From Asterias rubens (taxonomy: Eukaryota), in contig NC_047079.1 in NCBI RefSeq assembly GCF_902459465.1, positions 6,200,001 to 6,264,000 of the forward strand: a stretch of DNA of 64,000 nucleotides. The letters run 5' to 3'. Position numbers and translations under genes: made by a program. The notes under the pieces were generated by a model. That model ran no database searches, had not been told where the DNA came from, and saw nothing but the letters and a program-made list of their open reading frames with translations. This document shows, piece after piece, positions 43,301 through 46,300 of this stretch; the first letter of the stretch is position 1, and the number at the start of each line of letters is the position of its first letter.

Positions 43301-46300
43301 CTCAAAGACACAAAACTATTGCTCTACACAACTAAAAGCAAAAAAAAACACCAACAGGCACATTTGTGAGGCTAAATCAAATAAAAACCTATATCTTTGG
43401 AGTATTTTTATAACTGTGGAGTATTTTTAAACAGAGTTCAGTTGAAATTAAGGACAACTTTACCTAGTCCTAAAAATCTCTACAATATATGCGCTGTTCC
43501 ATAGACTGACGAAACCACATAGTCAACTATGTCCCTTTTCGAAACAAAGGCTCCGGCTTTGGATTCGGCATCAGGCTAGGTGGGCCCCGCGGTTGTTTTG
43601 ACAGTTGCCCGTGCTGTGCATTACACACTCGGGGCTTCAGACGAGAGAACGGAACCTGAAGCCGAATCCACAGCCGCAGCCGTGGTATCGAAAAGGGCCT
43701 ATGTTAGTTACAACGAAATCACACCGTTACGTCCACACTGACTACTTCTACCACAGATTCTTACCTGGGAAACCTGCATTTGAGACTGTGTTAAAGGAAG
43801 CGGGAAGAATGTTAAAAGATATCAGGAAAATTTTAATAGGAAGACTGGAAACTTAGCATGGTGGAGATACAATCTAGTAAGGTTTGCAGTAACACCATGT
43901 ACATGAGTAGAATTTGAAACTTTGCATGGTGGAGATACAATCTAGTAAGGTTTGCAGTAACACCATGTACATGAGTAGGATTTGAAACTGTGCATGGTGG
44001 AGATACAATCTAGTAAGGTTTGCAGTAACACCATGTACATGAGTAGGATTTGAAACTGTGCATAGTGGAGATACAAACTAGTAAGGTTTGCAGTAACACC
44101 ATGTACATGAATAGGATTTGAAACTTTGCATGGTGGAGATACAATTTAGTGCGGGTGAGTAGAATTTGAAACTTGGCATGGTGGAGATACAATCTAGTAA
44201 GGTTTGCAGTAACAACATGTACATGAGTAGGATTTGAAACTTTGCATGGTGGAGATACAATCTAGTAAGGTTTGCAGTAACAACATGTACATGAGTAGGA
44301 TTTGAAACTTAGCACACGGAGATACAATCTAGTAAGGTTTGCAGTAACACCATGTACATGAATAGGATTTGAAACTTTGCATGGTGGATAAATCTTGACG
44401 ATGATGCGAGAAGTTCAGACCAAAGGTTGAAAGGAAGAAACAGAGGGGAAGATTAAGACAGGAATAAGAGACACTGATCTTCTACTGCTTTTTTTTTTTT
44501 TGGGGGGGGGGTTATTTATATAGTGCTTAAAGGGAAGGTACACGATTGGTTATTGTCAAAGACCAGTCTTCTCACTTGGTGTGTCCCATCATATGCATAA
44601 AATAATAAGCCTGTAAAAATTTGGGCTCAATCGGTCATCGAAGTTGCGAGAAAATTATGAAAGAAAAAAAAACCCTTGTGGGACGAATTTGTGTGCTTTC
44701 AGATAGGAATAAAAGACCTTTAGTTAGAAGTCTTTTATTATTTTAGTGAGAAATTACCTCTTTCTCAAAGACTACATTTCCCACAATGTTTTATACTATC
44801 AACAGCTCTGCTATGCTCGTTACCAAGTCAGTTTTTAAGTTAATATTTGTTTTGAGTAATTGCCAAACGTGTACCTTCCCTTTAACGCATTAGTTTTACA
44901 TTTAAGACACATTTTCCGTATGCACCAAGGCCCGACTTCATAGAGCTGCTTAAGCAGAACATTTTCTGCCTAGCAAAATTAAGCAGGGAACCAGTCACAA
45001 ACTACACATATAACATGGTATTTTGGCTGGTAACCCTTCTTCAGTAAGCAAAATTGTTTTGTGCTCAAAGAATTTGTGTGCTTAAGCAGCTGTATGAAAC
45101 TGGGCCCTGGTGTGCAAAGAAAATAAAACTCGCTAAGCAGGAGAAGGTTACTACCCGACAACCACAAAATCATTAACATTTTTGTGTGACCGGCACAAAA
45201 TAATTTGCCAATAAATAAAATTTCCTCTGCGGTTGATTTGTCTGCTTTTGTGACATTGAGACGTGAAACCCTAAGCTGTGTTAATTATGGTACCCTTATC
45301 CGCTAATGGTCCGAGGGTATATATAGATCGCTATGATGATCAACATCATCCAGTAAGTGCCAATTTGATGGACTCTATGACTCACCGCCGAATTCCATGC
45401 CAATAAAATAAAATAAAAGAGAGGGACTATTACGACTAATAAGCTGAGTGAGTTATCGTTTGCTGGATATGTCTTCATATTTCAGTAGTGTAGTAAGTGG
45501 CGTGTAATACGAGCCAACCAAAGTATAGGATCATTATGCGGTTGTCGAATCCCACCCGAGTAACATGCCTGTGATAATTTTTCACAGGACTTGGGAAAGT
45601 ACTGAGTATACAGTGCTAACACACATCGGTGTATGGGTGAAATACCAAAATCAATCAAATCATCTATGTTTTGCAAAAATATTCAAAATATTGTTTAAGG
45701 TATCGCTGCATGTTTCAGGATAGATAGAAGGCAACTATTTAATCGGATTTTGTTTACTTGAAAAGGGTGTTTCATTCTTACCACTTCAGCCAATGCTGAG
45801 ATGACCTTCCCAAGTGTTGTCAGTGACTTGTTGATATTCGCTCCTTCCTGTTTTCAAAAACGTAAAACGGTTTTGGGAAAAACAATTAAATTTTAACTAC
45901 TTTTCAGAAAGAATTTTTTTCCCATATTTTTGTATAGAAAATATGACAGAAGAAAAAACAAAAAGCTATTTTTCATTTCCTTAGTTTTAATCTCAAGAAA
46001 AGTCACAAACCGTTAACAGGGCACGAATTTATGAGGAATGAAATGACCTTGACTGACCTTTAACCTGACACCTTTGGCCCCCGTAGAGTCCGCCCGCTCG
46101 CTGCCGGCCAGGTCCACTAGACTGATCTTGCTGACTTTCTCGGTGAAGAGGTTGGTCTCGACGTCGTGTCTCTTCTGCGTGAAGACGATGGTGAACACGG
46201 CGTGTGATCGACTACTAGTCTCATTCATGTTGGTGGACGCCACCGTTCTATATCGAAAACAAATATAATTTTAGAATATATTTTAAATTCTCCAAATTTC

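Follow-up and report, generated by a model that had tools for sequence, protein, structure and literature searches.

Does the intron that splits the K-loop region of a starfish kinesin-3 gene hold an additional, optionally spliced exon? The question is raised by a 64,000-nucleotide (nt) stretch of the Asterias rubens genome (contig NC_047079.1, positions 6,200,001 to 6,264,000; hereafter the window, numbered from its first letter), which is gap-free, has a G+C content of 38.8% and contains, on the minus strand, the greater part of one KIF1A/UNC-104-type kinesin-3 gene. From its sequence, the segment 43785..43765 of this strand was considered, on balance, to be probably a real cassette microexon that the starfish KIF1A/UNC-104 orthologue includes in some of its transcripts, because its anatomy and reading frame are exact, such a site is rare by chance and chordates have an exon of similar size and architecture at the same junction.

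The exons of the gene, mapped by tblastn with a moth orthologue (P0058), run from approximately 49193 down to approximately 7198 on the minus strand. The constitutive exon upstream of the candidate (45847..45782, a 66-nt span) encodes 22 amino acids ending in ...SALAEV and closes in phase 0 at GCT GAA GTG/gtaaga (the slash marks the exon border), with approximately 16 RNA reads in run X36 of the mapping described below. The constitutive exon downstream (42803..42963, minus strand) begins at ccctag/GCG AGC AAC AAG, is translated as ASNKKKKK..., opening with the K-loop lysine run, and had an RNA depth of 16–25 in the same run. When compared with solved KIF1A motor domains, this exon gave a match (E = 1.7e-28) starting from residue 294, at the K-loop lysines. 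Since the motor-domain match begins at the lysines in this next exon, the host intron (42964..45781, minus strand; 2,818 nt, phase 0 and made up of repeats for the most part) divides loop 12 directly ahead of the K-loop lysines, and the exon ends at 45782 and 42963 together with this match bear out the placement at the loop-12/K-loop boundary proposed in the initial annotation.

Read directly on the minus strand, the candidate has the letters and coordinates first attributed to it, in the context cacag/TCTCAAATGCAGGTTTCCCAG/gtaaga at 43785..43765. It encodes SQMQVSQ, is in phase 0 on both sides and is free of stop codons. An internal tgcag acceptor provides an alternative 9-nt version (43765..43773, GTT TCC CAG, VSQ), this acceptor scoring 5.6 bits with the weight matrices introduced below, so that the claimed in-frame insertion of SQMQVSQ (21 nt) or VSQ (9 nt) between SALAEV and ASNKKKKK was found to be accurate. 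Both lengths are multiples of three within the microexon range (≤27 nt), and the segment is located within the phase-0 intron that separates ...ALA(E/D)x from the loop-12 lysine run. The 3′ splice region (43786..43845, minus strand) combines an AG-free zone of 57 nt with a pyrimidine tract (72–75% C/T); in particular, the nearest AG upstream stands 57 nt from the acceptor AG, in agreement with the approximately 57 nt noted at the outset, and the 40 nt before the acceptor are 75% pyrimidine. The 5′ splice site CAG/GTAAGA (43759..43764, minus strand) scored 11.3 bits, close to the upper limit of the real donors of the gene. Overall, the splice signals of the candidate fell within the range of the real sites of the gene and of annotated tunicate exons.

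Moreover, two UUAAC motifs resembling branch points were found, with their A at 43812 (−27) and 43791 (−6), as well as a CUGAU at −37. The second UUAAC is at −18 relative to the internal AG. Of the features listed for eMIC-type exons in the sections of PMC8797185 considered here, the candidate has the long AG-free zone, the long pyrimidine tract and the UUAAC at −27. The arrangement of the two UUAAC motifs suggests a basis for the choice between the 21-nt and the 9-nt form: a branch at −27 would favour the first AG and the longer form, while a branch at −6 would leave no room for the first AG and would lead to the UGC-flanked second AG and the shorter form.

The rarity of such a site was estimated with a strict scan for in-frame, stop-free segments with a length of 3n between 6 and 51 nt, preceded by an AG-free zone of 40 nt or more and by at least 70% of pyrimidines, and followed by a GTRAG donor. 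The candidate was the sole match on the gene strand of the 64 kb, and zero matches were found on the antisense strand of the window, while first-order Markov simulations gave 0.5 matches per 64 kb, equivalent to approximately 0.02 for the host intron. Furthermore, position weight matrices (PWMs) trained on 17 introns of the same gene assigned 11.3 bits to the candidate donor (range of real donors, 1.4–12.0; top 0.23% of all GT) and 6.7 bits to the candidate acceptor, equal to the median of real acceptors (top 2.8% of all AG). Both PWM scores together were reached by no further in-frame mini-exon of the window. When the thresholds were relaxed by 2 bits each, only the 9-nt variant was added on the gene strand and two matches on the antisense strand, the chance expectation for the host intron being then approximately 0.09. 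A duplicated exon end was ruled out as the origin of the segment, as no second copy was found in the window even with three mismatches allowed. It should be kept in mind that the scan thresholds were set after the candidate had been seen and that the whole gene had been screened by an earlier reading, which makes these odds somewhat flattering; even so, the site is clearly unusual.

Pairs of isoforms with and without an insert at this junction, taken from RefSeq or Ensembl annotation through two profile searches and a cluster look-up, were found in chordates. The initial annotation had named an 18-nt vertebrate exon at the same position, and for KIF1B this was corroborated by annotated isoforms reading ...ALAEV/SKKKKK when it is skipped and ...ALAEV/DNCTSK/SKKKKK when it is included (18 nt). 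The counterpart in vertebrate KIF1A is DSGPNK; mouse Kif1a exon 13, considered as a parallel, was rejected for encoding the hinge and not loop 12. In lamprey, V/QSKKKKK alternates with V/DSGPIK/QSKKKKK (18 nt). Among tunicates, Ciona intestinalis presented Q/AKSKKK (isoforms X3, X5, X7 and X8) and Q/DCNGVST/AKSKKK (X1, X2, X4 and X6; 21 nt), Clavelina Q/AKSKKK and Q/DNGTSI/AKSKKK (18 nt), Styela Q/GKSKKK and Q/DIGVIC/GKSKKK (18 nt), and Ciona savignyi Q/AKSKKK and Q/VRY/AKSKKK (9 nt). Another C. intestinalis entry (P0284) carried a single extra Lys at the K-loop junction. Given that tunicate isoforms with and without the insert share the same junction, the optional K-loop cassette predates vertebrates, its minimum age being that of the ancestor which they share with tunicates. 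The proposal of a splice-tunable K-loop older than vertebrates was therefore supported for tunicates, in which the isoforms of C. intestinalis, Clavelina and Styela differ by a cassette of 6–7 residues; shared ancestry with the starfish exon is putative, and the starfish peptide is unlike the chordate inserts.

The splice architecture of the tunicate exons was close to that of the starfish candidate. The C. intestinalis exon (L007:2854-2874, 21 nt) has an AG-free zone of 45 nt, a pyrimidine fraction of 0.72, a GTAAGT donor and UGC motifs at −9 and −6; the Clavelina exon (L008:3332-3349, 18 nt), a zone of 49 nt, a fraction of 0.72, GTAAGT and no proximal UGC; and the Styela exon (L009:7787-7804, 18 nt), a zone of 47 nt, a fraction of 0.64, GTAAGT and UGC at −16 and −11. 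The corresponding values for the starfish candidate (43785..43765, 21 nt) are 57 nt, 0.72 and GTAAGA, with no UGC before the main AG. Used as a positive control, the strict scan returned the real Ciona exon as the only match in its intron, and it missed the Styela exon by 0.01 of pyrimidine fraction. The position of the host intron (phase 0 after ALA(E/D)x) was common to the moth, sea anemone, ostracod, amphipod, tunicate and starfish genes and, being shared by cnidarian, arthropod, tunicate and starfish genes, is ancient. No comparable candidate was found in the K-loop intron of moth, amphipod and sea anemone. The K-loop intron of the ostracod Cyprideis torosa contains a 15-nt in-frame candidate (SSGTM, L003:15940-15954) with an AG-free zone of 67 nt and a GTAAGT donor. 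Moreover, loop 12 differs in length before the lysines across the family, so that an insert would be tolerated there. Two proteins were rejected as orthologues for being KIF1B-alpha/KIF1C-like, one from amphioxus (P0040) and one from a metatranscriptome (P0062). In the JGI marine metatranscriptome, P0062, P0257 and P0396 presented one N-terminal KIF1 motor with two tails (approximately 1,210–1,237 and 1,757 amino acids), a pattern that mirrors the alpha/beta tail switch of vertebrate KIF1B; of the named relatives found by the search, those closest to this motor sequence were from tunicates.

Mapping on 41750-46300 was carried out with two raw RNA runs from a closely related organism (organism A), as well as with a set of RNA contigs and a set of DNA contigs. 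Run X36 expresses the gene, with a depth of 16–25 on both flanking exons and approximately zero in the unique intron. A read including the candidate would show as letters between a joint and not as a piece on the candidate; the joints listed from the read mapping were derived from repeats, and the junctions of the gene itself were not among them. An exact-pattern scan of JGI metagenome contigs for the genomic and spliced flanks gave no match, and a search of the protein collection with the K-loop exon alone (matches of 0.55–1.75 times the query length) returned only unrelated short open reading frames. The candidate lies within a single-copy island of approximately 200 nt (43673-43871), represented by one 199-nt organism A contig of ordinary depth, in which, at approximately 4% divergence, the AG and GT of the candidate are intact. 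In the K-loop exon, 3 of 161 positions differed between organism A and the window, all of them third codon positions as computed from the coordinates. The differences listed for organism A in 43673-43871 were spaced by 29, 29, 29 and 30 nt, a regularity that may be an assembly artefact. Within the same intron, the divergence of organism A rose from approximately 0–1% (41750-43058) to approximately 4% (43673-45544).

Several results weigh against inclusion of the candidate, and those on RNA, divergence, the UGC motif and the pyrimidine tract favour at the same time an unused pseudo-exon, in which chance would have placed a strong acceptor and a strong donor at a distance of 21 nt within a repeat-rich intron, the segment being spliced in never or only negligibly. 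No read of run X36 fell on 43715-43838, which is weak evidence, since a 21-nt piece with a mismatch is below the shortest mapped pieces (19–25 letters). In the two profile searches (with a Ciona and a P0257 backbone), vertebrate KIF1B-beta and KIF1B-alpha/KIF1C filled the matches listed, with no starfish isoform among them. The island differed from the organism A contig at 8 of 199 positions and another unique stretch of the intron at 24 of 556; as its divergence is no lower than that of the deep intron, the island shows no sign of constraint, with the little power of one relative at approximately 4%. One of these differences, at 43773, changes Val to Phe within the candidate, at the first base of the 9-nt version. 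No UGC motif, the expected enhancer, was found within 60 nt upstream of the main acceptor, the only one being at −5 of the internal acceptor. The pyrimidine tract consists of approximately 2.6 copies of a 21-nt tandem unit, a recent-looking local duplication beside a satellite; the site may accordingly be young. Finally, SQMQVSQ showed no likeness to the Asp-initial inserts rich in C, S, G, N and T (DNCTSK, DSGPIK, DCNGVST, DNGTSI and DIGVIC). A pseudo-exon would also agree with the outcome of the whole-gene screen, which flagged several other candidates and from which some false positives are to be expected, and with the ostracod locus, where 3–4 similar matches per 32 kb were found on either strand. 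Nevertheless, the background in the starfish window is far lower (0 antisense, 0.5 per 64 kb simulated), and the intron in which the match occurs is precisely the one that holds, in chordates, a real exon of the same size and architecture. We therefore hold the pseudo-exon to be a serious but rather doubtful explanation, and the cassette microexon is retained as the probable one.

Two further explanations were judged very improbable. The pyrimidine-rich AG abutting a consensus donor at the 3′ end of the segment (uuucccag/guaaga) could act as a recursive-splicing or decoy site, a zero-length or transient intermediate that would allow the intron to be removed in two steps without leaving a mark in the mRNA. 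Introns with recursive sites typically span tens of kilobases, whereas this one has only 2,818 nt, and such a site would leave unexplained both the open 3n frame and the parallels in chordates, so that little probability was given to it. Hardly more credible is a constitutive exon, whose seven residues would always be present and whose skipped form would be an artefact of homology-based exon mapping. Microexons are often absent from gene models, and the splice sites here are as strong as those of the constitutive exons of the gene; however, the chordate counterparts are all optional, no constraint was seen relative to organism A, and a similar insert appeared in no homologue among 150 representatives or in the short-fragment search.

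Regarding the surroundings of the candidate, a 68-nt satellite of approximately eight copies (43848-44388, 91–95% matches) starts approximately 60 nt upstream of its acceptor, and the satellite unit is also high-copy in DNA runs of related organisms. Several segments of the intron had a DNA contig depth that exceeded the single-copy level by factors of hundreds to tens of thousands, corresponding to interspersed high-copy elements. One very high-copy element (42966-43117) is found directly upstream of the acceptor of the K-loop exon, and RNA as well as DNA runs accumulate on it; read along the gene strand, the element has a tRNA B-box-like motif, GGTTCGAATCC, and looks like a tRNA-derived short interspersed element. 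In the tail of the gene, one segment had two competing tblastn matches (25543-25442 and 24849-24715), and an earlier reading of the window flagged four more alternative-exon candidates there (24742-25541, 14721-14932, 12779-12796 and 12342-12386).

If the cassette microexon is genuine, its inclusion would insert seven residues (SQMQVSQ) or three (VSQ) in loop 12 before the lysines that contact the tubulin tails. Such an insert would extend the flexible N-terminal arm of loop 12 with no added charge and would place the lysine cluster farther from the motor core. Splice variants of KIF1B reportedly alter motor activity, a result attributed by others to Matsushita in 2009. By analogy with these variants and with K-loop mutagenesis, microtubule engagement of the motor would be altered, and one gene could thereby give cell-type-specific motor variants. 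We infer further that the candidate is used by the starfish spliceosome, that its regulation is probably neural and that it affects motility. The starfish exon would, if real, join the known class of KIF1 K-loop cassettes.

Several members of this class, or of its regulatory context, have been described. In the sections of Torres-Méndez et al. (PMC8797185) considered here, two exons of mouse Kif1b (18 nt and 42 nt) are eMIC-dependent, the 18-nt one appearing in table S2; by its size, this Srrm3/4-dependent exon would be the loop-12 DNCTSK cassette. The same sections report for fly unc-104 a 3-nt eMIC-dependent exon (chr2R:16762097-16762099) and a sensitive 27-nt exon, and only four fly exons, one of them in unc-104, are said there to coincide in position with an Srrm3/4-regulated exon of the mouse orthologue. 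In this case the authors favour convergence, the fly exon being absent from other insects. Gene order and distance suggest that the 3-nt exon is likelier than the 27-nt exon to be the K-loop counterpart. Worm unc-104 also carries an annotated microexon. Moreover, zebrafish and human share a set of conserved neural microexons regulated by Srrm3/4, to which that of kif1b belongs; deletion of the kif1b microexon in zebrafish alters social behaviour (PMC12626424, where the sections considered here do not state the position of the exon in the protein). On a broader scale, a 2026 preprint recognizes only two neural microexons as confidently ancestral to bilaterians and finds recurrent evolution at the same sites to be widespread.

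As for its origin, the starfish exon could be homologous, on the ambulacrarian side, to the K-loop cassette of chordates, both descending from an 18–21-nt optional exon of the deuterostome ancestor that retained its position, length and splice architecture while its peptide drifted freely, although we regard this as unlikely; with the fly exon, the cassette would perhaps have been present in the bilaterian ancestor too. Common descent is no more likely than an independent origin at a structural hotspot, since the peptide is unrelated to the Asp-initial inserts and recurrence is documented in the literature. Were homology true, the cassette would be a third deeply ancestral neural microexon beside those of APBB and MADD, with selection acting on the length of the spacer rather than on its sequence. 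The K-loop governs how kinesin-3 motors land on microtubules and stay engaged with them, and the cassette that vertebrate KIF1B has at this site counts among the conserved neural microexons with a reported functional effect on the protein. A working echinoderm cassette would thus extend K-loop splice-tuning across deuterostomes, the starfish and tunicate cassettes would offer a clean test of inheritance versus repeated reinvention at a structural hotspot, and the natural spacer variants (0, 3 and 7 residues) would serve single-molecule work on K-loop geometry; a mere pseudo-exon would be an ordinary finding.

Among known systems, the Drosophila unc-104 microexon lies in the orthologous gene and is Srrm234/eMIC-dependent, with 3 nt versus the 21 nt of the starfish candidate. 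The vertebrate KIF1B and lamprey cassettes share with the candidate the same phase-0 intron, the in-frame position just before the lysine run and a polar, uncharged-to-weakly-charged composition. However, the starfish segment has 21 nt instead of the 18 nt of the vertebrate KIF1B cassette, SQMQVSQ has no sequence similarity to the D-x-x-x-x-K pattern, and both included and skipped isoforms are annotated for vertebrate KIF1B, whereas the candidate is known here from genomic sequence. The tunicate exons are annotation-backed and start with Asp as in vertebrates, while the candidate starts with Ser. In Ciona and Styela, UGC motifs are found 6–16 nt before the AG, in contrast to the main starfish acceptor, a difference shared with the annotated Clavelina exon, which also has no proximal UGC. 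The tunicate cassettes have in common with the candidate the junction, a GTAAG donor and a near-identical splice architecture, the Ciona exon being also equal to it in length.

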